A stretch of 64,000 nucleotides of DNA from Dimorphilus gyrociliatus (lineage: Eukaryota; Animalia; Annelida), in NCBI GenBank assembly GCA_904063045.1, contig CAJFCJ010000028.1:62001-126000 (forward strand). The letters are read 5' to 3'. The number at the start of each line of letters is the position of its first letter. Position 1 is the first letter of the stretch. A model generated the notes under the pieces. The model ran no database searches. It saw only the letters and a program-made list of their open reading frames with translations, and was not told where the DNA came from. Made by a program: the position numbers and the translations under genes. This document shows positions 20,409 through 43,500 of this stretch, in pieces.

Positions 20409-20699
20409 GTATCATCTGTTGATTATAAAAATTACTGTAAAGTCTAGCGGACTGCAACATGTGTTAAAATTTAAGGTCAATATTAAAGCAGGATACGTAT
20501 GTTTATATTATATACATTTTTATTCACCATAAAGACTTATTAGCCTATGCATGCGTGTCTTTATTTGGCCGTTTTCATTGTTTATATCCAAGATATACAA
20601 TACTCTTGTTATAACAACCTTTGAAATTTTAATGTATTTTTTATTTAACAGTGACGTTGGACAGTTTGATATGTAGAAAGGAAGGAAAAAGCGGAATTG

Positions 20700-23600
20700 A
20701 TGGCACCAAAACAAACAGGTTTGATCCTTTACATTCTTAATTTACTTACGGAGAATCCAACGATCCCTTACCAGATAGATAATCGATTAACAATCTTTAA
20801 TTGGTAAATTTACAAATTAATTGAATGACAATTGGGATTTATTCGTTTCTCAGAATATTTATATTTGTTATCTGACAGTAGTAGGTTAAATGGATTTCTT
20901 CTCCACGTAGATCAATACGTACCCGTGCTATGAATGACCGATATATAATTTAAAAAAACCTCACTCCTTATAATGATTTATTATGACATTCTTTATGAGA
21001 AAGTTGAGCAATTTTCGAATACTTTCAGTATTTCTTACATATGCGAATAGCATATTTAAATACATTCGACTCGTTGATATATAGCAGCTACTTTCCTGAT
21101 TAAAGTGTATACGCTTTCGTCTTATAAGCTTTTTGTGTGTACTGCTCCCATTCAATTTGTTTTTTGAGATTTTCAGATGAATAACTCGTATTTATTGACC
21201 TCTTTAAATTCGTTATTAAACTTATAAAGCTAACATTTCTAAATATATTGATTTAACGATAAAACTATAAACGTGAAAAGAGGAAAAAATAGATAAACTT
21301 TCAACATTTATTATTTATCACAAATGGAAAGAATATATAGGCAGATATAAAGTTTTTCCTATTCGCAAACTCGAACAAACTATATATACAGTATAGCTAT
21401 ATATTTAGATGTAAATAATACAGAAAAATAAAGAAAAATACTCACCTGGAGTGTTTTTCTAGTAGTGAATCAATACTAATTGTCCTCAATAATATTAATA
21501 CCTTTTTTTTTTTATTAATTAACTAACTAATTAATTTATTGTAGAATGATAAAGAGATTTTCTTGTTTTGACAAATATGAACCACTTATATCTTGAAGAT
21601 ACAAAAAAAATCATAAAAAAGCAAATATCTGTTAAAAAGATGAGAATTGTTTGTCTCTCTATTTTCATACTCTATTGTATATTACTGTTCAGCGGCACAT
21701 CTGTCAAGATTGTTTAAATTGGTTGTATTAAATTTAATTAGTTTACTTCCCTTAGCAACGTGGAAAAATTCAATATTTCTAACATGCTTTCTTTTCTGTC
21801 TGCCTTGCCCCTACCCTCCCCTCTTTCTCTTGATCTGCCCCAGCTCTCTTATTTTCCACCACCCCTTCTGTCTTGTATTTTTCTTAATTATTTCGTATAT
21901 AATGAATTATTTAACGATCCAATTCGATTTCCATCTCATTTGCTTGAATAAAGTCGAGCGAACTATGACAAAACAAAAAGAGGACAGAAGCCCGTCCTTA
22001 TCGAGCGTCACGTCATCGAGCGTCCTGTTGAACAACGATCAGTTAACACCTCGTATTGACGTCGGTTTGGTAACGTCTGATCAAAACGATATTCCTCTTA
22101 ATCAGTTAGTTCGTTCAAAAGCGAGCTTAGATAAAAATCATTCTCGTCGTCGATCAAAGAAATTAAGAAAAAAGGCTTCAGTCAAACTTGACAGTTACAT
22201 AGACGATCTAAATTACTCAAAAGTCGTAAAGACACTACCTAAAACTAACAACACAGTGAAAGAAAGAGGAACTCAAACTCTTAACAATACTCCATCCGAG
22301 AGGAACATCTTGGACATAAGAGATTATTATAAACAACTCGATGAGGAAAAACGAATAAAAGAGGAAGAAGAAGCCAAGTTAGCAAAAGAAGAAGAGCAAG
22401 AGCAAACTGAGAAAAACGAAAAAGATAGCCAATTAAAAGAAATTATTGAAAGTATAGCCAACCACGAAAAAGGAGTATGTAAAATTGAGCTAGTGCACCA
22501 ACTATTAGGCTTAAAATATGATGATGGATGTCTAAACATAAAAGTTGAATGTGCCTGCGAAACTTGTACTTATAAAATCGACGAAATGCCGTCTAAAATG
22601 GATAATAAATGGACTCAAACCCGAATAAAAACGAATAAAATCATTCCAATTTTAACCAGTACACGCAATTAATATCAATATAATATAATATTATTTTGAC
22701 TTAAGTTTTATCTATTGAATAATAATTAAAATATTTTTTAATCTAAACAGAACAACAAAGACATATTAGAGCTAATGATCCTGTATATAATGCTTCATTT
22801 CGATATGCAGTGAGTATACTCTTAGATTATTATCATAAACAGGTACAAAATGATAATCATATCGTCTGTCTTTAAAATTTATTTTTAGGTTTTATTAAAC
22901 TTGTAAAATATTTATAGTCAATAGAAATAGTGTAGCTTTTTATAATAATATTCATATTCTTCATCTAACACGTTTTAAAAGGTTCAAATAGCGTATACAT
23001 TTACTTGGCTTTTTATTATGCTATTATAAAAAATACTACATGATTGCGAGGTAGATAAAGCATAGCAGGTTATATAGTTATAATTGTGCTTTATGCTTTA
23101 TATAGTATATAGTGTATATAGAAAGTAATATATTACGTTATTATACAGAGGTGCTACCACTGGCAATTGAAATCTAACAGATGATTTTATACATCTAAAT
23201 ATTAATTATTTAAATATTAACATAGTGACTCTTGAAAAGAGTAGGGAAGAGGAAAATTTCTTCTTTTTTTTACTTTTCCTAAAATTTTAAAATACTAATA
23301 TATTAATAATAGAATTTCTTAAAGTATTAACTAATTAATTAAATATTTTATAATTTTTTGTTAAAAACGAAAGTATAAGCTGATTGATTAGCCTAAAATA
23401 TTTAAATACAATGTATACTGCACATATAAGTAAATATTATATTAAACTAGTATATATACAGTACAATAGGTATGAATAATCTAAATCTAAATTGAAAATT
23501 CTTAATTGTATAATTAATTTATTTATATATTCAATTCGTATAGCGCTATACTAATTAAATCATTTAATTAAAATATAGATAATACTTAACTATCTCAATA

Positions 23601-26600
23601 GAATTAATTTAAAATATTCATAAGAGAAATAAAATTCAATAAGAAAGGGATGTCCGTTAAATAGTGTATTTATTTTAAGTAACGATTTATAGATGCTGTC
23701 TTGTTTATATATATATATATATATATATATAAACCTAACCTTCTCACATACACTTTTAACATTTTTCCATTGAAAATCTACATATATATACATTATATAT
23801 ATAAATATATCTATCAGCATGTATATATCTTTTTACATAATGAAATTAACCATACAGAAAAATTAAAATATGTATTTCTATACTTGTTTACTAATTTTAT
23901 TTAAATATTTTCTTTCTTTTCTAGAATAATCATATATCCACATCAAAGTACAACTTTTTAACTTTTATACCGAAAAATTTATTTGAGCAGTTCCAGAGAT
24001 TGGCAAATGCCTATTTTCTTGCTCTTCTTATCCTTCAGGTATGTTTCTCTCTTTTTGAAGCTATTAGTATACTTTTATAAAGTTCCCTTTACATTTATAC
24101 TAATGTATACCACCTATATCTTTAAATAATTAAGAAATGATTCTTTATCAGTAGGTTAAGTATGTTTAGTTAATTATTGCAGCTTATACCACAAATCTCG
24201 TCATTAAGTTGGGTGACAACAATCTTACCTCTAGCTATAGTTCTAATTCTGACGGCAACAAAAGATGCTGTTGACGATTTTGTAAGCAAAATCCATACCC
24301 ACGCATTGTATAATATTTCTATCCTTATGTTGAAAGGAAACTGTTTAGGACGGGTTTATGGGTGTTTTTAATTGTAATGGTCTTATCTTTTTTTAATGGT
24401 TATCGGTGTATTATTACAACGTTTTTTAGTACAGTACCCAAGGTATTATTGCATATTAAATACTAATATACTTGTATATGCAGTATATATATTTTCCTAT
24501 GCAAACATTGGTTTCTTTCTACATCTATAAGTTACTAATAATACAATTAGTTAAGTACAAAATTTTATAGGCTGTTGTTTATTAGTTTTTATGATATTAT
24601 TTAGTGATATAAATAAATGCCTATTATATATGTCAGTATATTAAAGTAGGAAATGTATGCATATAACATATATGTATGTATGATTTTTTTTATATATAAA
24701 ATATACTGTAGTAACACAGCAAGAATCTACAAACACGCGGGCATACACACATATATAGTGTACAAACAAATATGCAAATACTGTATATAAATTTATACAT
24801 TGTATATATTAGTATACGCTGTATATATATATATATAAAATATTATATTAATAAGTATTAATATACAATTATTCTTAAAACATTTATACATTTATTGAAA
24901 ATAATTTTTTCTATAAATTACAAAAAAAAAAAATAACAATAGCTGATACCCGCTATATCATCGTTAACACCTGCTACCACAATAGTACCCTTATTTGCCG
25001 TTATATCTTTGACGGCATTGAAAGATATTATTGATGATATTGTAAGTCTAATAATCAAGATTGTATTAAAAAAAATGAATTAAATGTGTTTTCTTTTGCG
25101 CACCCATTTTTGTAACGAAATATCATGTTCATAGTGTAGAATTTTTGTTTTAAATATTCATCATTGCTATATTTGTAAACTCACGTTTATTGAATCTTAT
25201 ATTTCTAATTATTTTCTTCAATGTTGTGTTGATATTATACAGTTAATTCCTCAAATTTCATCTCTCACTCCACTTACGACCATTGTTCCTTTGGTGGCCG
25301 TGCTAACCGCAACGGCCATCAAAGATCTCTTAGACGACATTGTAAGTTTATTTCGATAGATTAAAAATAAACTATCAGCTAAAAGAGTATAGCAATATGA
25401 TTCAACTAATTATCTTGTTGTAACTTTTGTTTCAAAGATATAGTTTTTTTTCCAAAGGTTTACTTATTAAATATCCTCTATCTTTCGTTATTTTATTGTT
25501 TGTCCAATATTAATAGGAATGTATACAAGTAAAGGATTTTACAACCAATTTCCTAATATTAGTTCACTTCTAGAAACTTAATCTTGCTTAATGAGAAGTG
25601 TGAAAGTGATAACAGATACCAAACAAAGCAGTTGATATTAATAGTATTGAACTTATGGTATTTATACATATTTTGAAAACATTCTATAGGATAAAATAGG
25701 AAAACTGGACAAAAAACAAAACGAAGATATCTAGTCGTTTTGTATTCCTTTCATTCTTATGTCTAGTTAATTGATTACTTTATTTTTCTTTCTCTCTGTT
25801 TCTGTTTTATTCCTTTCTTTCAATTCCATTCCTCTGTATTTCAAATTTCAATAAACTTTTTTTTTTATCTCCAACATAAATTATGTATAGTACCGTTAGT
25901 TAATTGTAATTGTTTAACAGGGCCTGTTTCATTCGCATTTTCATCGACTAGCTAAAAGTTGTCATATATATATAATTAATCAAAATTACCTTTAAGTGGG
26001 CATAAACTATTTTATACGTCATATATAATTTTAAATTGAGATTGAATAGTGGCTAAATTAAAAATATTTTAGATAGATTGAAATTAGCATTTACTTCTAA
26101 TTGAAAAATCCTCTCTAATTAAAAAAATGAAGAATTCCATTTAATACATCTAACATTAAAGTATTACATGAATTTATTATATTTCGAATTCAAACAGGGG
26201 AAAAAAAGTAATAACAGCATTTTTCAATTAATAATTAATATTTATTAATGAATATATGGACTTATTAATAACTGATTCTTTCTAAAACAGTTCTAATGCT
26301 GTTGGTAATGTAAGAAAAAAAATTTCGTACGAAATAAGCTTGTACTAAGTCATCGTTTTTCTTGTTAAGCAAGTTAGAAAATGTTGTTTATAGACTTTTA
26401 TTATGATTCTTAGTGTTTTTACAAGTAATTGAAAGGTAAAATTGTATTATTGAATTATCTACTACCTTTTTTCCATATTCAACTTCTATTCTTTCGACAG
26501 TTCAATAAAGTAGACACAATAATATTACATTATAAAGTTCACTTTTATTCAAACATTAACGAATAAAGTTCATAGAACTTTTTAATGAATGCTTATTGTT

Positions 26601-29600
26601 CGATTTTCTATACTAGAAACAACGAAAATGAAATCTATGAATAAGGCCTAGAAAAAAATATTTTTTTATTCAACACCTTTTCCTTCGCTTCCTGTTGAGG
26701 TCGAATGATTTCGATCTCTTCCTCGCCACTTTGTTTACTCGTCATTTCCTACAGTAATAGTCTTTTTAAATTATTGATTATCTGATTGTCATTGCTAGAC
26801 TACAGCTATTCAGAAATATTTCTCGTTAGCGCTTAATTATTTACTCTTTTGAAAGAAAAGTAAAAAGGCTGGTTCAGTATTATAAAATTATAATATCATT
26901 TAAAAATAAGGGTTTTTTGGTGAATTTTCTTCGTTTTTCCTAATAAAAACAGTCTATTATTTTGACAACTGGAGTATTTTTGATACCGATTTAGTACTTA
27001 TAGATAAATTAACAGTTGTTTAATCATCAAATATACTAAAAGTGGATCAATTTAGATAGTTGGCTATCTTTCAATAAATGTATTTCCACATCAGAATATA
27101 AGGTAGGTGTAGAATAGGAAAGAAGAGACTCTGAAATCGAAGTATATGAGTAGATTACTACTTTATTTGCGTGTTCTATTTATATTAATATATATATACT
27201 TATACGCAATGGTATCTAGTCACACAGTATTTGGACAGAAGGAGGAAACTGTTAAATCTTGATGATAGCTTTCATCTATTATATTAAATAATTCTTGCTA
27301 TGGATTTACTCTGCAAGCAATTTCTTCTCCCTTTTATTTCTTTTTCTTCCCTTAATATTGTTTATTTATATCTTATTTTATTTCCATTAATTACGTGTTA
27401 GTTATATACAAAATTGAACTATAATTCATGGTTGATAACAAGCTTTTATAAATATAAATAGGCGAGACAAACAAACTTCTTATTTCTACAATACTATTTA
27501 TATCTCCCTTTTATTTAGTGCTTAAATACGAAAACAAAATATTAATACTTAAACCTTTGGAAATATTAACTCTTTAGATAACTATTACTTTTATTCTGGC
27601 CATTAATAGTAGAGCAACTGGCTAAAATATAAACAAAATTAGACCAGTTTGTTTTAGCACGTGATATGTTTATTAAAAGAGAATAAATTGGTCATCTTTC
27701 ACTGGCTTTCTAGTTTTGTTTATATATATATTTGTTATATTGTCCTGTATGCTAGTGATACTAGTTTTAATGCTTTGAAAAATATTGAAATTATAAGGAA
27801 AAAATATAAAATCATTAAATATCTTAATCATTCCTCACGCTTGTATAATTACTTTATTGAAATATTTCTTTAGTATTTTGTTGCATGTCTTTTTGAAAAC
27901 AAAAATAGTACATACATCTTTTAGATACCTATCTACGAGTATGTAATACAGTATATATATATACATATATAAATATATTTGTATATATGTATATAAATAT
28001 AGATATACATATAATTGCTATTCATTTATAACAATGGCTTATGTAATAGTAATCATCTAATAGATAACTTTAAAAAAAGAAAATGTATTGTATTAATTAA
28101 TGCTTAGAATGCTTTATAAAAAATTTTTTTTCTATTCTTTTTCAAGCTTCAATTGTTAAGTTTCTTTTATCTTTTTTTCTTATGATTTTGATATGGGCAC
28201 CAGTCTAATTATCCTTAGTTATGCTTATTTCGTTCAATTTTCTTCACCTCTATTATTATTTGACTTTTCTCTATAAATAACTTTAGTATTATCATTATAA
28301 ATCATTTTGGAAATTATTACTTTAGAGACGTCATAGAAGTGATAGTCAAGTAAATAATAGGGAATCATATGTACTGAGAAATGGAGAATTTGTTGAAGAA
28401 AGATGGCACAAAGTGGTCGTTGGAGATATCATCAAAATGGAAAACAATCAATTTGTCGCTGCCGATTTGTTTCTTCTATCTTCTTCCGAAGAGTCAGAGT
28501 TGATTTACATCGAAACTGCCGAATTGGATGGGGAAACCAATTTGAAAGTTCGACAATGCATTCCTGATATATCCTGCTACAAAGATGACCAAACAAAATG
28601 GGGGAATTTTAATGGCGAAATAACTTGTGAACCTCCAAATAATAACTTGAATAAGTTTAATGGCTATTTAAGCTACAACAATAGAAAGTTTCCAGTGTCC
28701 AATGATCATATGCTTCTAAGAGGGTGCGTCTTACGTAACACATCATGGTGTTACGGTATGGTAGTCTATGCCGGTAAAGATTCAAAGCTGATGATGAATA
28801 GCGGTCCGTCAAAATTCAAAAGAACACACATTGATCGTTTAATGAATATCCTAATAGTTGGAATATTTTGCTTTCTTGCGTTGATGTGCCTTATATGTAC
28901 CGTGGCTTGTGGAGTATGGGAGACAATTATTGGGTATGATTTCCAAAAATATCTTCCTTGGGATAGTTATGTTCCAGGATCTATTGCGAAAAGTGACAAA
29001 TCTGGGTCAAAGAATGCAGGAGCGGCAGTCATCGCTCTATTAGTCTTTCTCTCTTACGTGATCATTTTAAATACCGTAGTGCCTATATCGTTGTATGTCA
29101 GTGTGGAAATTATTCGTTTCGTGCACTCACAATGGATCAATTGGGATATAAAATTATACCATGAAAAAACCAATACTCCTGCATTAGCGAGAACAACAAC
29201 CCTTAACGAAGAATTGGGGCAAATAGAATACATATTTTCCGATAAGACGGGAACGCTAACTCAGAATATAATGACTTTCAATAAGTGTACCATTAATGGT
29301 GTTTCGTACGGACTACCATATGATGATGATGGAAGACCTATGGAAAAACCTAAGCTTGTAGATTTTAAAATCAATAACAAATATGGCGATACAAATCTGG
29401 AATTTTATGATCATCGTTTGTTATACAAGATTAAGAGGGGCGACGAGAGTTGCCAACTATTTTTTAAACTGTTATCCCTTTGCCATACTGTTATGGCCGA
29501 AGAAGAAGATGGTGAAATTGATTATCAAGCTCAGTCACCTGACGAAGAGGCCTTAGTTAGTGCTGCTAAGAATTTTGGTTTTGTCTTTAAGGTAAGTCAA

Positions 29601-32600
29601 ATATAATTTTGTTTTCTATGTCTACAATTACATTTTAATTGCGTGTGTGTTGAAATTTATAGTCAAGAGAACCTCGACAAATCGAAATAGAAGTTGGGGG
29701 AGAAATCGAAGTACATAAGATCCTTGCTATATTAGATTTCAACAATGTTCGTAAAAGAATGTCTGTTATTACGGAAAAGGATGGACAAATTAGATTATAC
29801 TGTAAAGGAGCGGATACAATGATTTTTCAACGACTTTCCCCGGAGTGCGAAGAACTAAAGACAATCACAATTGAACATCTAGATGTAAGTTTGCTGATCT
29901 ATTTTAAAAAGAATAGTTTTTTTTTTATAAGTCTATAAATCGAATAACAGGAAATAAATGAGAGGAAATATGCAAATTTATACTTTTATCTTTCTTTTCT
30001 CAGGAATTCGCTGGGGAAGGACTGAGAACTCTCTGTTTGGCTTATAAAGACATCGATAAGCCCACTTTCGATGAATGGATGGAAAAGTTTGATGAGGCTG
30101 CATCAGCTTTAGAAAATCGAGAAGAACTCCTCGACGAAGTTTACGAGGAAATTGAGCAAAATATGACGCTTATCGGAGCGTCTGCTATTGAGGACAAGCT
30201 TCAAGACGGTGTTCCAGAAACGATTGCCAATTTAGCCCTTGCTGATATCAAGATTTGGGTTTTGACAGGTGATAAGCGTGAGACCGCAATCAATATTGGC
30301 TACAGTTGTAAACTATTAACGGACGAGATGGCAGATATATTTGTTATTGAAGAAGATGATGAAAATTTAGTGAGAGAGGGTCTCAAATCGGCGTATAACA
30401 AAATAAAAAACTTTAATAGTAAAACCAACCAAAAGCCTGGTCAAGAAGGAAATCATTTCACCAATCCCCAAATGAACATTGGCGATTCACAGGCTCATGG
30501 AGGTTTCGCACTAGTCATAACAGGAACAAGTTTATATTATGCATTACAAAAAAATATGGAAAAGTTGTTTTATGAAACTGCTTCTTCATGTAAAGCTGTT
30601 GTTTGCTGTCGAGTTACACCAGGTCAAAAAGCTTTGGTTGTATCCCTTGTTAAGAATTACAAAAAAACTATTACACTTGCAATAGGAGATGGAGCTAATG
30701 ACGTTTCAATGATTCGAGGTTAGTGGACGTTTCTTTCTTCTGTATTTAGAAAGATATGTCTTTCACCTATCTTCTTTCTTGTCCGTCTTACTTCCTATAT
30801 TATTTATATAAAATGGAAATTTTACATTCCTCGAAAGATTTTCATCATTCTGATAGATCATGCGATGGAGCGTGTTATTGTAGCCATTATAGTATCATAT
30901 GAAATGTCTAGCAATATCTCTAAAGATATTGTTACCTTTATCTATTTGACTTTAATTATTTAATTTATTACTTAATCGTTGAAATAAATTATTAATGCTT
31001 TCTTTTTTTTTATTTATATACAGAAGCCCATATCGGAGTGGGTATAAGTGGACAAGAAGGAATGCAAGCCGTCTTAGCATCTGACTTCTCCTTGGCGCAG
31101 TTTCGTTTTCTAGAACGTTTGTTATTGGTTCATGGACGATGGTCTTACTTGAGAATGTGCAAATTTATGAAATATTTCTTTTACAAAAATTTCGCATTTA
31201 CTTTATGCCATTTTTGGTTCGCCTTCTTTTGTGGATTTTCTGCACAGGTATTAAGAATATATAATCTCTTTCTTTCTCGATTTTATTACATAAAAAAACG
31301 TATGAAACTATTTTCCTTCTTTTTTTCACTAAGTGAAGTCAAAAAGTTATCACGAGTGATATATTTTTACCGGATTATATAAAGAATTAGGCACAATCAA
31401 TATTTATTATCATTGTCATCAATTTTAAGTGCATGATTTTTTTTTTAAGATGTAAAATTTTAATTTCCAGACGTTATTCGATCCGTTTTTTATCTCCTTC
31501 TACAACGTTCTCTACACATCTTTTCCAGTTTTAGCATTGGGGATTTTTGATCAGGTAAAATAAATGAAAATATCGGAAATTGGAACGTTGTCATGTTTTT
31601 TTCTTTTCAATTAATATTGAATTGCTTTGCATATTCCTTCTTTTTAATTTTGGGAATGTGATTGCTCTTTTCTTCCTTCTTCTATTTGATTTTATTCATT
31701 TACACTTATTTTTTTTTACTTACTTTCAGTTTCTACTAAATGAGTCTCTTCTCATTTTTAATATTTATTTCCATTGTAGCTTTAACTATCCCTTTTCCAG
31801 GCTTTTTATGACGAAGTGTTTATTTCTCTCTACAATGTCTGCTATACTTCTCTTCCTATCCTTGCTCTTGCTGTGTTTGAACAGGTTTCCCTTGTTTGGT
31901 TCCCATCCCTCTCTTTATTCCGTACACTTTTATTCTTCTTTTTTTTTATTTTTTTTTTGCAGCATGACAATAATGGCTCCAGATAGCTTACCCCTAAAGA
32001 ATAACTGTCACTTTCTATTTAACAATGCTTTCTCTTTACTTTTCTTTTTCTTAGAAACTAACTTTTTTATAAGCTTGTCATCTTTTGTATTGTTTCCCTT
32101 GCGAAAAAATATAGAGAAAGAAATGATTCTAAAATTTAATTACTGTCACTTCTTTCTTTTCAAGGGAAAAATTATTTGAAAATCTTTAGGAAAGAGAGTC
32201 TTTTCACTAGTTTTTCTTTATTTTCTGGTAAAAAATTTGAAATCTCATAAATTTTTTATAGTTTTCGATAGAGTTTGTATAATAAGACGTTCTAATTTAT
32301 TTAATAATGCAAAAAGAAAGCAAAAATACCGATTATAGACTTTAATAGATTTCTCTTTTCTAAGACATAAAATCAAAAGATAAACAACTAAATTGGATTA
32401 ATTTTAAGATAAATATCTTGAGCTAACGAAAACGAATAACTTATTTGCAGGATGTAAACGAACGCTACTCTCTGCAATATCCGAAATTGTACAAACCGGG
32501 ACATTTGGATTTATTATTTAATAAGAAAGTCTTCGCGCAATCAGTTGGTGAAGGAGTACTTTCATCTCTTGTACTTTTCTTTATTCCATACGGAGCTTTT

Positions 32601-34568: not shown

Positions 34569-37500
34569 TTAAATTATTGTAGTGTCTTGCGGTTGAACGA
34601 TTCGCATGTTTCGTCGTCTTCGACGTCTCCTCGAACCAGTTTGAGACGTAAAAGTCACTTTTCTTTCAACTATTTCAAACGGCCTTAAACAAAACGCCTG
34701 TAATGATAAGAGAATTTAAAGGGAAATTGTAAATTTGCAATTCCAAGGTTTTTCGTTTAAGCTCATACTGTATTTGAATTAATAAGTCGAATAATCCCTA
34801 CATCTATTGAGAATTAAACAAGAGATTGTAACCGAAATTTATACAGAATAACCTTTGTTGAGTATTTTCAATTAAAGAGTCAAGTTAATTAGTTATCTAG
34901 TCAATAATTATCCCAAACGTCATCAATTTGCTGCCCCCTTAAAAGGAAAGGCTTCTCTTTTGGGCTTCTCAATTAACCGTAAAACTTGCTTTTTTTTTTT
35001 TAATTCAGTATAAGCCTAAAAGTTTCTTTATCTTGATATTTTGCTAAATTGGAATACACTTAGAAAGAAATCCATTCCAATAGGCGGTAGGGGGTGGAAA
35101 GGAGAAAATAGACAGGGGTTATAGAAGTACGAAAAAATAGATGAAGAAAGAATGTTTTCAACTTTGAAATTTTCACTAATTGCATTCCGAATTTCGTTGG
35201 AACTCTTGGTAGTTTCTAATTGACTAAAATGCCTCATCTTCACTTGAAAACCGTCGTTTTATTAAACAAATAAAATTTGTACGCTATTTATACAAATCGA
35301 TGGAAAGACTGGAATAGATTAACTCTCCTACTTGGACCTCTATAAACAACTTTTAAAAGCGACCGAGAACAGCTTTAGCAAGTCGTATTTCGTTTCATCA
35401 TTGGTAAATCGAGATAAAAATACAGAAAATTCTCTTACCCTATCCGATGGAAGGAGTATAAAATTATGCGGTGGATTCGTAATAACATATCTCTTAGTGG
35501 TAGATGGCTGTCCAGGATCTCTTAATCTATAAAGCCCAATACATAAAATACTATAAGTCCTTAAGGCGGCAGTAAATAAATCCCCATATCTGCCATTATC
35601 CGCAAATTTGACCAAAGGCCCGTCGTAAAGTGACAATTGAGCTACTCTGCACCTGTGTCTATTCGTGAAAGTTGTGAGATCGCATACTCCTCCCCTCATA
35701 CCCATTCCCTCGGCTAGAATTTGCTCCAATTCAGGCGTTGCTCCCCCAGTTATTAGAGTTCTTATTAAAGTCAATGCATTGTCGTTGAAATAAGTTGTTG
35801 ACATGAGAGAATCTAAGACAGAAACCGCAAAAGCATTTCCACAAGCAAAAGGCTGAGTGATGTACAATTCCGTATTCGGATCGTCGTCATCGTCCTAAAA
35901 ATAAAATAATGAAAAAGCATTAAATTTCAAATTGGTTTAACGGAATAAATCAATTACAGACTTTGCAGGACAAATTAACTTCTTTTCTAATATCTAAACA
36001 AACATTATTACTATTATATAATGACGTTTCTATTCAAATATCAAATATACCGACAAAAAGAATTTGTAAGAATACTAAAAACTCCTTCTACGATCTAGCC
36101 TCAGAACATGGAAAATGAGAATAACGAACAACTACGTTACATAGATTAAATATACCTTCTAGTCATTCGGTTTGCAATTTTAAAACCTTTATTAGTTTAT
36201 TATGTTCAGTTACATATCTAAGTACATAATATAGATAATCTAGTCGTTTAGATCAAGATCTTCATCGTTATTTTATCTTCTGTTCTCTTTCATATCATAA
36301 AATTCGATGCAAAGATTATCCTTACCTGATCTAAGAATTGTACGTTCGCATCATTTCCTAATTCAGTTATCATAGGTATATCGATTCCTTTTTGGTCTTC
36401 AAATGTCATTGCTTTAATATTTAAAGAACATAAAATAGCTTCCTTGTCTACAAGACTAGAATCATCAACAGCTCTCCTAGAACTTAGAATAACGCACATA
36501 TCGCATAGATGTACGTTTACTGCTCTCAAATTCGCCCTATTCAAAGGAGATCCGTCTAAAATCACTATTTTCGGAAAGTTTGATAAAGTTTTCCATTCTT
36601 TTCTTATATATTCTCTATCACCAACAAGAATAATTTCCTTTAATTCGTTGAGATGAAAATTCGACGCTCTTAATGGCATAACAAAATTTCTCAGACCTAT
36701 GAATTTGGAAAGAAAACATACAAATATTATTCAAACGCAAAAATAAACGATTGCCTTCAAGAAACTTATGTTATCTTTTATTGTTTAATTTACGAAAATA
36801 CTTATATATATATATACTGTATTTATGGAATAACTGCATAGAAACAACTGTAAGCTTCTTACAAGGAATAGGCCTATTACGATTTGCAAATCCTAAAAAG
36901 GTAGTTCGTATACTAAGTCTTATTCTATTTCCCTCGGCACTTTATCAAATAACTAGGCCTAACACCAAGAACCGTCAAATCAGCACTACGATTTCATCGT
37001 TAAAAAGCTACATTGCCTTTGGTTGCAATGATCACGGCTTCACAGATATTAGAAGAAAGAAGAGAACAATAGAATGAATAAAAAAGACAAAAAAGCTAAA
37101 GCTTTGTACTGGGAATACCATTTGGAGATTTATATTTCTCATATAGCCATAATTGAAAGAACTTTAAAGTTTTTTTCCCCTATTCAGTTTATAGAAACTT
37201 TTCCATATTTTGACTTTGAAATATAAACCAAATATAAAGAACTAGTCGAATTATCTGTTTTAAGTATTTTAGCATTAAAAAATTATACATATACTAGTAA
37301 TATAGCAATTATATTATCTATGAAACAAAAGAAAAGAAACAGAAAGAAATAGAGCTGGAAGATTAATAGCTTGAAAAATTAAAAATAGGAATCATAAGGG
37401 CAAAAGGTAAAAGTTCAGTGAAAGATAAATGAGAAAAAGGAAAATTATCTATAAATCTTTGAAAATGTTTGTTGTTCTTTCTATTTCTTTTGCGTCTTTG

Positions 37501-40500
37501 ATTCTAAGCTTTATGCGGAAAAATATATAGACATTTCTCTTGATCCGCAAGAGAGTGTAGATAATAGATGTGCGCTATGTAACAGATGCTGTAAATGTAC
37601 TATTTATTAATGCTATAAGATAGTATATGGCATTTGGGAAAGAAATGATATATAACTTATCTTCTAACCTTAAAAAATGTTTAGCACCGATAGGTAAAAA
37701 CATCTACTAATTGGTAAAAGAGTATATCAACGTAAACGTAACTTACCGATTAGCGGAGAAGTAGCATCGGCAAATATACAAACGACAACGTGATTCCTAA
37801 AAGAAAGATTAGCAGCCTGTTCTCTTTCTATGATGCACGAGTGAATTGCTCGTTCTTGGCACCAATGGAACATTCCGGTTGAATCCAATAGCTTTGTATC
37901 AACGGTAATATCTTCGTGCGTAGTTGAGGTTTTCGTTTGTGTCGTGCTATCTATAACTTCGTAATCAAATGCAGGTACAGAGGCTGTCTGACCAGATGGT
38001 ACACGGCACTTGCATCTCTTTATAGCTCTTTCCTCTTCAACATCAAAATGACATTTGACGCAATAGTAGCAGGCTCTTTTAACCTCGTCTGCGCTTTCGG
38101 CGATAAAGAAACCCTGCGTATCAGCCTCAATACGTACATTTACGCCTGGATTGATAGCTATACATGAATCTGTTTGAGTTTTAGATCTGTAATTCCTCGC
38201 TTCGATCGCTATTAATAACAATTTTAGTTTAACAAAGCAGAGCTCCGCAGCCTCTGGAAAGTTTAGACCTACAAAAGCTGGACTGAGGTATTCTGTATAC
38301 ATTTCCATGCCAGTGCCTCTTAGGTAATCGTTTTGCCAGTGTGCTCTATCAGACCCAGATTTAAAGGCTCGCATAGTAAATAAATTAGCCATCAGTGTCG
38401 AAAAACCGGGAGCTAAGACTGATTGCGCAATAAAACCCAACTTAAGTTCCGCTAAGCAAACAGCGTCGTCACCCCTTTTCCAATCCCAACTAGGAATGTT
38501 TAAAAGATATGCTTTGTTATGATACTGCAATAGCTGAATGATAACTTTTATATCCGAATGGTAATTTTTTATTGAAATAACTCTCATTATGTTAGTTGCA
38601 TCTTCAGAATCGGGATCATCGCAGTATTTATTAGCTAAAACTAGGCAAGCATCAGCAGCCTTAATGGAAACTCTTTCCAAATCGTTCGAATCCATAACTG
38701 AACCTTGAAAGAATTCTACTTGAGTGAAATGTCGTTTAAATAGACCTTCCAACTCTAAATCAGGCTCTTTGCGGTGCATAATTACAAGTTGAACATCAAC
38801 ATCTTCACGGTCTTTGTGAAGAAAGTCTGACATAAAGTTGGATACTGATTCATAAGTTATATGACCACATACGATAATATGGCTGAAACACAAAAGAATT
38901 GTTAATTAGTACGGCTCTGTGTATGCTTGTGCACAAAGCATAAATCTATTCATCTTCTACAGCTGAATAAACGGTTTTCTAAGAAAAAATTGCGTTTCTA
39001 CTAATCAATAATTCTCTTGTCCCCTCTTTTCTATCTCTCTATGCGTCCTAAAAAAAATACCGTACAATCTCAAGTTTTTTAAAGTTAATTGTTGAGTTGA
39101 GACTATTTGATTTTGTTTTATTATTGTAGCATAAAAGATATCGCTACTTTGCTGTCACTCTTGGTCGATTCCGGATATTAAGAGATTAATTAAATATGCA
39201 AAAGAACGGTGTATACATAAACTATAGTGGCAAATTCGTACATAATCCTAGATAGTTGCTTTTTCTTCCTCTTTTCTCCTTTCTAAATTTTTCGACTATT
39301 CGATCGCCTGTATTTAATAGAATTGTGCAAAAACAAATTTTCCCCTTTATCTTTCCTCGACTCATCGTCTTATCTACTCTGTTAATAAAAGGTTATATTT
39401 ATAATATAATATATATATATATATTTATATATTATACATATATACTAATATATGGTATATATTTCTTATACACTTCGTAAATATTAGTCTGTTTGCCTAA
39501 TGTTTTTTTTCTCAAGTCCTATTCGTATAAAAAAAAATTAAACTAACTGATCTCAATATAAGCTATGTTTTCTATTAATAATACTATATGATAAATCGTC
39601 AACATTGTCGTGTTGATAGGCGTAATTCAAAATGGATCACGTGATTCTATTAAATACACTGGATTGAGTGAAAAAGCAAAGGTCGAAGGGTAGATTATGA
39701 AAAAAAAAAGCAGGAAGTTTATCTTACCGTTTTCCATGTTCCTTCTTATATGTGCCAGTATATTTACTAAAAGTGAATGATATATTTAGACTAAAATTAT
39801 TATTGTTGTGTACTTTACCTTCTAGTTCCTAGAATGTTTACGATTTCTGGAATTAAGTTAATTAAAGAATTTTAACAATCTATTCTCTAAAATTAAGCCT
39901 ACCTGGAACGAACGATGCGAACATAGCCTGCAAATAAAAACGAAATCTGTATAAATTATATATGGCAAACAATGTGGATGCACTTTTTAAACGATTCATG
40001 TGCCTGGCAAAAAAAATTTATACACTGTTGTATTTTTTGCAGTAGAAACATTATATATCAGTTTTAAACTTCAAGATCAATTGAATTATAAAAAGAAATT
40101 AGGTCGAAGTAGCTAGTTTTCTAAAAAGGGCCTATAAACTGGATAGCAGCTGGCGTGGCCTCCTAAACTTATATTTGTAGATCTATGTATATGTTATGCA
40201 GAGGACTAACCAGCATTTTACAAATTTATATATATATTGTATTTAGTTTATTCATGTCATTAGCTACTCTAAAATTGGTGACTAATTAAATTCTGTTTTT
40301 TTTTTTAATGGAACATTTCGAGATGGAAATTCTATTTGCAATGTGTTGAATATTAATAATTGTTATTAAACAATTTATTAGGTTTAATCACTTTTAACAG
40401 CTTGTTAATCCTTAATAATTGTTTCTTTTGGGAAGCGACTAATTGGTTTCCTTAAATAAACAAAGCTAGAGTAAAATTTTGGCTAATTTTGCAGTAAAAC

Positions 40501-43500
40501 TAAAATCTAATTTCTTTTATTAATTTCGCTCTTTCTCTCTCTCTTTCTGTCGTTTTATAACGTGAATAAAAAGTTAAAACAGAATTATTCCCATTCCAGT
40601 TTGTCTTACAAATTAACCTGGTAAACATTTGTTTTGTGTCGTCTTTCGTCTATTTTATATATACGAAACGATAAACGGTTCTTGCAAACTTGAAATAAAT
40701 AAATAAATAAAATCCTACCAGAGCTCCAAGGATGAAAAATATCATGAAAAATCTTCCCAAGCTTGTAACGCATTGTATATCTCCAAATCCAACAGTTGAC
40801 ATTGTAACTAACATAAAGTAGACACATTCCCAATAGGTTAAGTCTTGACCATTGCTAAAATTCTCAAATGGATCCCCGGAATTTTCTAATAAATGTATAA
40901 ATCCGGCAGCAGTAAACCAAATTGATATCAAATTAGAAAGTAATTGAGATAATCTTATTGAATTGGATGTTTTCAAAATATTTAAGTATTGCAAAACATC
41001 AGGGATTGACATTAGTCTTAGCACTCTTGTGAACCGTAGGCCTAGCCAATTTCGATTCAAGTAGATAGCAACAAAAGATGGTGGAATAGTAAAGTAGTCG
41101 ACGAAAGAATATAATTCGAATAGGAACCAGAGTTTGTCCGGTGCGGCGACTAATCGAATAAAGAAGTAGACCATGAAAAAGATATTGAACGCCAGATCGA
41201 CTTGTTGTGTTGTAGACTGCGACCATCTTTCGCAAGATTCCACTTTCTCCCTGTATAATAAATAAGTATATACTTTTAATCTAGGACAAAAACATTAAAG
41301 ATTGCGGTAATTGTTATTTTTGCTGAAGCTAATCGCTGGAAGGCGCTAGGATTGTAAGAGTTAAAAATCTAGTCTCGTTATCTATGAAGAGTAGATAGAC
41401 AGGATAAAAAAAAGTAGGAATAGAAAAAATTGAGAAGAAGGTTGTTAGATTGGCCAGCAATTGAAGGGATTTTCTTAGACGTTATTTTTACGTGCTGGCC
41501 GAAAAATTTAAATCAGATGTAGGATATCCGAAAGGTTTATATTCTTACGAATGCAACAGTTTTTCATTTATCAACTTTCCCCCTAGAAATTGTATAACTG
41601 GCTTTCTAAGGAAACTTTCTTTTTATTTTTCTATCTTTTCCTTACCTCTATCCATACTTTATCCCATCTCTCTCTCTCTCTCTCGCTCTCTCTCTCTCTT
41701 TCTCTATCAGACATTCCTAATAAGCTTGGCAGAATGTAAATAAATATAATAGAATAACCTTAGAAAGAAAAATCATCAATTTTCACTCCTTCTTAATATG
41801 TTGTAACCTATTATATTTCAAAATTGCATTCTTGATTTCTATCTTAAAAAAATAGCCTCTAGAAATTTTTAAATTTTCTAAGGCTAAAGAATTCTTGCAA
41901 GAAAATTATAAACAAAAAATTACTTTATCGACCACCCCTAGGTAAAGGTCAAACGAATGAGTGAAATACTTAAAGTTGATCTATTTTGCAAAACAGAAAA
42001 GATAGAATGAACCTGTTAATTACTTTATTAATTAAACAAGTGACATAAATAAACGCTTTTTGTTTCGTAGTTTCAAAGGTTGTATCTGTTATACACCTGT
42101 AGACCTATAATTAGGTCAGTACATTTTTTACAATATATGCTAAACGTCTTTTAAAATAAGAAGCGTCTCTTTTTGAAACTGTATCATAAAAATTTCTTTT
42201 CTTTGTATACTAAATTCTTCAACCAGAATTATTTTGTTATTTTTTATACAGAAGTAATTTGTCAATATTATGATAAAATTCAAAAGTATGTTAATCCCTT
42301 ATTGTATTGAGAATAATACTTTCTATAATAGCTAGCCATTTTCTGCTCGAAGTTCTACAGGATTGTTTAAAAAAAATTACACCTGTCTAGTCTGAAGAAA
42401 AATAGCATTGAAAATAGAGAAAGATAAATAGAGAAATGTAGGAGTTAAAGGGAGGAGAGCAGAGAGTAGGAGTGAGAGAGATAGAGATAGAGAAAGAAAT
42501 AGTATAATCTCAGAAGCAGAGAATGAGCAATTAACCATTTATTTATATCGATTTTCGATATTAATCCTCTATAAACGTTTAATTCCTACATTTATGAGTT
42601 TTACTATCAACTTTTTAAAAAAATACTAAAAGAATATTTCAAAGTTTCAAGTCAAAATACGGTTATGACCTTTAGAAAGCGGCTGCCTTTGATTTTCCAA
42701 ACGTCGAGAGAATAAAAATAACGGTGAGTGGAAAGAGAGAGAGAGAAAGTATGAAGGGAGGGGAGAAATAAAAGAACCAATGCCTATCAAAATTTCAAAA
42801 GTTTCAAATAGTTCTCTGTTTGAGCAATCGTTCATTTTAACTTATCAACAAAAGATTGAAAGTTTTTGTTGATATACTGTAACTTATTTCAGTTATTTCA
42901 ACATGTTTCAATAATAATCGATTGCATTTGAAACAATCAACGAGCTGTTGCAGTTGTACTATAAAAAAAATTGACTTGTGTTTTTTATTTTTATTGTAAA
43001 AAGTTGATATTTTTTTTCTATATTATTATTATTTTTTTAATTATTTCCATTATTATAAATTTGATGCGAATTATATAAGAAAATAAAAAGTGTTAATGCT
43101 AAATCGTAATATAAGAAAAGCTGAATAAATTATTAATATAGGATTACTTAGCAACAGTAGTACAGCCACTTACTAAGGACCTTAGTGAGAGTTGTTGAAT
43201 CATACTAATTACCATTAAATTGTGAAAACAAGTAATAACTTATAAATTGTGTAAATTTAAGGCCGATAGGATTTGCTTTTTTTGTTTACGAAACTGCCTA
43301 ATACATTCTTTTTTTGTCTAAATATTCTAGTATACTTCCGAAAAAACTTACGTAGAAGCATCAATAAAGTAAATTATTAAAGATGAAATGCTCAAGAAGA
43401 ATACTAGGACAACCTGAAAGAACAAAAGGACTATTTATAATAGTATTTGATTAGTTTAACACACAAACCAGTATCCGACCAGTCGTTGTCTGACCCGATA

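Follow-up and report, generated by a model that had tools for sequence, protein, structure and literature searches.

The lipid choice of P4-ATPases is set by residues of transmembrane helices TM1, TM2, TM4 and TM6, as mapped by mutagenesis and by comparison of paralogs. In the current structural picture, an entry gate admits the substrate to a binding site made up of TM1, 2, 4 and 6; the lipid head group is thought to move along a groove between TM2, TM4 and TM6, and the gates open and close as TM1-2 tilts (PMC12424579, a flippase review without mention of splicing). Mutually exclusive exon clusters that stem from tandem exon duplication have been reviewed separately (PMC9013439, PMC9741552), and an evolutionary model has been presented for docking/selector competing RNA structures (PMC6071210). 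The sole mention of a P4-ATPase that we found in this connection is a predicted exon cluster in human ATP10B (PMC5740500). A census of mutually exclusive exons in C. elegans does not contain tat-2, and we found no paper on mutually exclusive exons in ATP8B, in CG14741, or in TM2 of any P4-ATPase. This kind of exon cluster is well known; its occurrence in TM2 of an ATP8B-type flippase appears to be undescribed.

Here we report on such a locus within a 64-kb stretch of DNA (the window), whose sequence is spiralian-like and comes from a compact, AT-rich genome. An ATP8B-type phospholipid flippase gene of this spiralian worm holds three versions of one exon, and we consider it likely that they form a tandemly duplicated, mutually exclusive cluster.

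Gene identity and anatomy of the cluster

Judged by domain, subfamily and structure matches, the gene is a P4-ATPase of the ATP8B type, closest to ATP8B and not to ATP8A, 9, 10 or 11. Homology searches were run exon by exon or with the protein of a related species. The N- and C-terminal domains of P4-ATPases (PF16209 and PF16212) were both found on exons of the window, the former (PhoLip_ATPase_N) at E 5e-19 on the constant exon upstream of the cluster. The constant exon downstream scores 435 bits against the flippase subfamily model TIGR01652, and its product is 93% identical to the related species' protein (P0289), which itself matches that model over its full length at 1235 bits. The nearest named proteins are labelled "phospholipid-transporting ATPase ID / ATP8B" in many animals, at about 65% identity. 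The best matches among solved structures are ATP8B1 chains, with ATP8A1 far weaker. Together with the DKTGT site, the Pfam domains, TIGR01652 and the ATP8B1 structures bear out the ATP8B assignment of the first-pass annotation.

The exon chain is fixed by a 4.4-kb transcript contig of the related species (L003), which maps to the window as eleven exons: 20651-20718, 22745-22809, 23925-24038, exon C, 28326-29591, and onward to 33223. Both flanking exons are thereby found where they had been predicted, the upstream one also by its Pfam domain and the one from 28326 onward also by translation. The intron that follows the cluster is far longer than the remaining introns downstream of it (about 70-560 nt). 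Farther along, on the minus strand at 35340-41243, lie big open frames that look potassium-channel-like, with a pore-loop "TVGFGD" recognized by eye; they stand tail-to-tail with the flippase gene.

The three variant exons (Table 1) have the structure that had been proposed for them. Each measures 99 nt, is in phase 0, translates into 33 residues without stops, and is preceded by AG and succeeded by GTAAG. Protein identities are 20/33 for A and B, 21/33 for A and C and 24/33 for B and C (61-73%), and pairwise DNA identity is 56-62 of 99 positions. When each exon was compared with the 64-kb window by tblastn, only the three copies were returned, at E 1e-8 to 1e-13, and the next best match had E>0.04; the similarity is therefore far above chance. 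The same tblastn searches found no fourth intact copy anywhere in the window. A segment at 25552-25629 that reads "FPNISSL", starting 211 nt past exon C, was considered as a fourth copy and set aside: it has an in-frame stop and an E-value of at least 13, and it is taken as a chance match, a relic of a fourth copy being the other reading.

All three peptides align to residues 133-164 of human ATP8B1 (PDB 8ox4 and others), a segment that starts with the final turn of TM1, crosses the exoplasmic loop and takes in the entire TM2. The earlier label of "TM2 exons" was thus nearly right: the exons do encode the whole of TM2, but they also hold the end of TM1 and the loop. The entry-gate Gln of TM1 is the final residue of the upstream constant exon, and the variable exon begins directly after it. 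The motifs TT, PL, KD and DD are invariant across A, B and C. They differ at positions 9-11, in the loop and where TM2 begins, at 18-23 in the middle of the helix, and at 26, 29, 30 and 33 toward the cytosolic end.

Table 1. Features of the worm locus, in window coordinates, and TM2 exon copies at orthologous loci of other animals
Feature	Position	Strand	Remarks
Upstream constant exon	23925-24038	+	N-terminal segment and most of TM1; Pfam PF16209, RNA contig, L003
Variant exon A, aromatic "SW" type	24183-24281	+	33 codons, AG/GT; upstream joint in RNA contig
Variant exon B, "TP" type	24943-25041	+	33 codons, AG/GT; weak A-rich acceptor
Variant exon C, canonical "TPLTT" type, major form	25243-25341	+	RNA joints on both sides
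Candidate selector, A-B intron	24886-24900	+	44 nt upstream of B; 15-bp predicted helix with 27069-27083
Candidate selector, B-C intron	25183-25194	+	49 nt upstream of C; 12-bp predicted helix with 27069-27083
Second, weaker complement	25847-25856	+	10 bp with the C-side selector; complement search
Candidate docking site	27069-27083	+	Complementary to both candidate selectors
Long intron 3' of the cluster	25342-28325	+	2984 nt; L003 exon chain
Downstream constant exon	28326-29591	+	A domain, TM3-4, DKTGT phosphorylation site; translation, TIGR01652
Homologous 84-nt exon pair encoding TM6	31471-31554 and 31801-31884		AG/GT sites
Tubulanus polymorphus (nemertean), 4 TM2 exon copies	L006 21700-21798, 23287-23385, 24632-24730, 25955-26053		All AG/GT; two aromatic type, two proline type
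Lottia, Candidula (gastropods), 2 TM2 copies each	L005 7303-7401, 9895-9993; L001 25408-25506, 27213-27311		Each gene model uses a different member
Plectus (nematode), 2 TM2 segments			Gene model P0290 reads through proline-type, then aromatic-type
Owenia, a millipede, Diploscapter, amphioxus, a sea cucumber			1 TM2 exon copy each

Use of the variants in RNA

The RNA data are contigs of one public run (X1), which show presence, not absence; the run behaves as RNA, because GT..AG joints occur in it. One contig spans the upstream constant exon, and among the joints present are 24038>24183, from that exon to A, and 24038>25243, from the same exon to C. A single upstream donor thus serves two of the variant exons. 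Exon C is joined to the next constant exon as well (25341>28326). The contig that bears A runs past the donor of A into the intron, up to 24378, and no joint from 24281 is listed. Depth is zero across 24824-25131, the region of exon B. A further joint, 23922>24683, has AG..TG ends, 21 nt on one side and low-complexity T- and TA-rich sequence, and is probably spurious.

Joints between variants (A-B, A-C, B-C) were found in none of the run's contigs, and rare double inclusion may still occur. The data thus support the use of at least A and C one at a time. The first-pass annotation had predicted mutual exclusion for all three exons, and had named junctions that never include B or C as evidence to the contrary. 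Its prediction is supported for A and C, which occur singly and in no two-variant contig, and C is joined on both sides; it does not extend to B, which is absent from the contigs. Exon C is the main form: it is the version in the transcript of the related species, where it is identical at 32/33 residues, and it has the best pyrimidine tract.

Under the proposed arrangement a given mRNA would contain a single variant, since a second one would add a further in-frame helix of 33 residues and invert the topology of the protein. We would expect B to be a third variant that is used rarely or locally.

The uninterrupted A contig may be read differently. If the donor of A were idle and A-containing RNAs read through to an intronic stop, A would be an unproductive decoy, and the one contig that bears it, which continues to 24378 with no joint from 24281, is what such a decoy would leave behind. 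Minor branches, however, are dropped from De Bruijn contigs, and A has a consensus GTAAG donor. Constraint on A at the protein level and its identity to vertebrate ATP8B2-type exons at 25/33 residues make no sense for a non-coding decoy, and we regard this reading as very improbable.

Selection on the copies

The divergence of the copies had been described as mostly synonymous or conservative, and the estimates agree: among the paralog pairs, pS is 0.59-0.94 (saturated for A-C and B-C) and pN 0.21-0.30 (NG86). Exon C and its counterpart in the related species differ with dS 0.37 and dN 0.01, giving dN/dS 0.04. Of the 39 differences between B and C, just 3 are at second codon positions. When all of these differences were treated as neutral hits on B, 0/20,000 simulations kept an open frame and at least 24 identical residues; with half of them neutral on B, 2% of simulations kept the frame and at least 24 identities. 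Neutral decay of B is rejected on this basis (P 0 to 0.02), and the copies do not behave as the neutrally decaying duplicates that had been named as the outcome to look out for. B also keeps all 19 positions that are common to A and C, the near-invariant ones of the family among them. With pS near saturation and proteins still 61-73% identical, the substitution pattern of B indicates that it was a coding exon, kept by purifying selection, through most of its past, and a recent loss of use is possible.

That last proviso leads to a narrower account of the locus, in which only A and C work as alternatives and B is recently out of use or negligibly rare. It would fit the zero coverage of B in the run, the weak, A-rich acceptor, and a search for exon B in protein fragments by reading frame, which returned insect fragments only, so that no matching fragment was found. 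The history of the exon argues otherwise. Its frame has stayed open despite an AT-rich context, the positions common to A and C have been retained, second codon positions are spared relative to C, simulated neutral decay has P<=0.02, and other spiralians retain two to four copies over long times. On balance we think the account unlikely, if by no means negligible, and continue with three variants in the cluster.

How one variant may be chosen

Several routes to mutual exclusion are closed at this locus. Every donor reads GTAAG or GTATG and every acceptor AG; the sites are thus U2-type throughout, which rules out U2/U12 incompatibility. Steric exclusion, for which the distance from donor to branch point would lie below about 50-60 nt, is ruled out by introns of 661 and 201 nt between the variants, as the first-pass annotation had argued. 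It had also pointed out that double inclusion keeps the frame; with exons of 99 nt any combination does so, and NMD therefore cannot enforce exclusivity. The acceptors differ in quality in the order C > A > B. A branch-point-like site lies about 35 nt before the acceptor of C, and a run of A precedes the acceptor of B.

From these constraints a regulatory mechanism had been implied, with docking/selector pairings in 24039-28325 as the place to look. Within this single genome, the search brought out one statistically supported candidate pairing for the proposed mechanism, but no duplex above controls by energy. The candidate docking site lies in the long intron, where 27070-27081 is the top 12-mer with partners in both inter-exon introns in a multi-partner scan. 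It is the exact complement of 24888-24899, and the complement of 25183-25194 with one G.U pair. Its multi-partner score was reached by 0/150 docking-shuffled and 1/150 target-shuffled controls (P<0.01). The two candidate selectors are the same 12-mer with one A>G transition, a shared motif that would arise by chance with P about 0.05, and the motif is enriched in the cluster, which holds 4 of its 10 matches in the window (whole-window expectation 3.4). The predicted helix between 24886-24900 and 27069-27083 has 15 bp and -15.6 kcal/mol. When 100-nt flanks were aligned, the only intron sequences that proved conserved were GTAAG and the 12-mer preceding B and C.

Other searches gave less. Global and windowed comparison of the four introns yielded no intron-intron duplex better than Markov-shuffled controls, and the candidate helices, which are short (10-15 bp), AU-rich and known from one genome, rank below the thermodynamically best intron-intron duplexes. 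The same multi-partner scan found nothing above the null in the four-exon cluster of Tubulanus. A search of Rfam returned only a sub-threshold, miRNA-like match on a TA palindrome, and the listing of inverted repeats is dominated by TA-rich low-complexity matches.

A model that these elements suggest is simple. The docking site would pair with one of the two near-identical selectors at a time. Pairing with the selector in the B-C intron would loop out C and favor B; pairing with the selector in the A-B intron would loop out both B and C and favor A; and where no pairing forms, the choice would fall on C, which has the best acceptor. Such pairing is the likeliest control of exon choice that we can propose from the intron sequences, and we hold it tentatively, with clearly less than even confidence.

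The chief competitor is a choice made by splice-site strength together with tissue-specific RNA-binding proteins, not by RNA-RNA pairing. In that scheme a strong pyrimidine tract would make C the default, inclusion of A or B would depend on activators or on a factor that represses C, and the 12-mer shared by the selectors would be a protein-binding or branch-point element. The strong inequality of the three acceptors speaks for it, as does the failure of any intron-intron duplex to beat shuffled controls in energy; a common motif 44-49 nt upstream of acceptors lies in branch-point territory, and protein control is documented for mutually exclusive exon pairs of C. elegans (PMC4165533). What protein control leaves unexplained is that, in the downstream intron, the multi-partner scan ranked an exact reverse complement of the motif first, and on its own it does not explain how in-frame double inclusion is prevented. 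We give it about the same weight as the pairing model, below an even chance. Should the docking/selector model hold, the worm gene would provide such an RNA switch outside arthropods and vertebrates; to our knowledge, no proven docking/selector system exists beyond those two groups.

TM2 exons in other animals

Orthologous loci were searched with the exon peptides, and more than one TM2 version was encountered in several of them (Table 1). In Tubulanus, RefSeq isoforms X1 and X2 use the fourth copy only; in the third, the "LIP" start no longer has its conserved Pro. In the two gastropods, the exons group by copy and not by species (support 89/85 and 96/74), and the pair therefore predates the split between Lottia and Candidula. 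As in the worm, the clusters of Tubulanus, Lottia and Candidula precede long introns (4-12 kb). Exon C represents the very conserved "SSLTPLTT" form, which takes the final place of the cluster in the worm, Lottia and Tubulanus alike, and A comes nearest to the "SW" form of vertebrates. The statement of the first-pass annotation, that SSLSW belongs to vertebrate ATP8B2/4-like proteins and SSLTP to invertebrates, is confirmed by protein comparison, SSLSW being the rule in the former and SSLTP in arthropods and spiralians.

A phylogeny of the exons had been put forward as a check on the three copies. With 33 columns, only the gastropod ortholog pairs and a nematode aromatic group received support and most forks did not, a resolution too low to date A, B and C or to tell an old A from a convergent one. 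No second TM2 version was seen in the isoform sets of Panulirus, a tick, a horseshoe crab, amphioxus and a sea cucumber, and scans of metagenome DNA for exon C and for exon A gave no matches.

Some protein records deserve a remark of their own. The Plectus sambesii model P0290 (residues 78-143) probably results from the mis-joining of two alternative exons, and P0254 has an exact internal repeat of the TM2 segment that is probably an artefact. At exon position 10, two orthopteran proteins (P0320 and P0319) differ, Gryllus with the aromatic "TW" and Anabrus with "TP", and millipedes have "TY"; given this variation in arthropods, hidden alternative exons may be worth a look. In current gene models only one of the four copies is present for Tubulanus and one of the two for each gastropod, while that of Plectus runs through both of its segments.

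The worm gene also carries a homologous pair of exons for TM6, the helix with the conserved lipid-site Asn. The upstream member is the canonical form, and the one in the transcript of the related species; among ten loci compared, the duplicate is present only in the window. A bolder scheme would join these observations: an old spiralian, possibly older, TM2 cassette which gives one ATP8B gene both aromatic-type and proline-type versions of the entry loop and TM2 and, together with the TM6 swap, yields up to six flippases under docking/selector control. If it were true, six flippases of differing lipid preference would come from one gene. We rate this composite scheme as doubtful.

Implications and comparison with known systems

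A swap of the variant exon would replace the TM1-TM2 loop and TM2, parts which, jointly with TM1, TM4 and TM6, make up the entry site and groove for lipids. As the swapped segment would line these, the isoforms would be expected to differ in lipid selection or in transport kinetics. They are natural, matched proteins that would differ only in the TM1-2 loop and TM2, plus TM6 in the worm gene, and their expression offers a direct and cheap test of the role of this segment in substrate choice. Gastropods have retained similar cassettes over hundreds of millions of years, and nemerteans possess them too. For research on splicing, the locus offers a compact three-exon spiralian system with an explicit, testable docking/selector candidate.

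Set beside described systems, the gene is a familiar P4-ATPase with an unfamiliar exon arrangement. With human ATP8B1 (PDB 8ox4, 7py4 and 7vgh) it shares the N- and C-terminal domains and the DKTGT site. Unlike vertebrate ATP8B genes, which have a single aromatic-type exon and owe their diversity to the gene paralogs ATP8B1-4, the worm gene would hold one aromatic and two proline types available by splicing. Known mutually exclusive clusters (PMC9013439, PMC9741552) resemble it in their tandem exons of equal length and equal phase, in purifying selection and in the placement of the variants in a functional core segment; they differ in gene family, and in the worm two of the three exons have RNA support. 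The candidate pairing has its closest likeness in insect clusters (Drosophila Dscam, 14-3-3 xi and Mhc; PMC6071210), with the same downstream-docking geometry and one pairing at a time, whereas the candidate helices of the worm measure 12-15 bp, are AU-rich, come from one genome and reside in a spiralian host.
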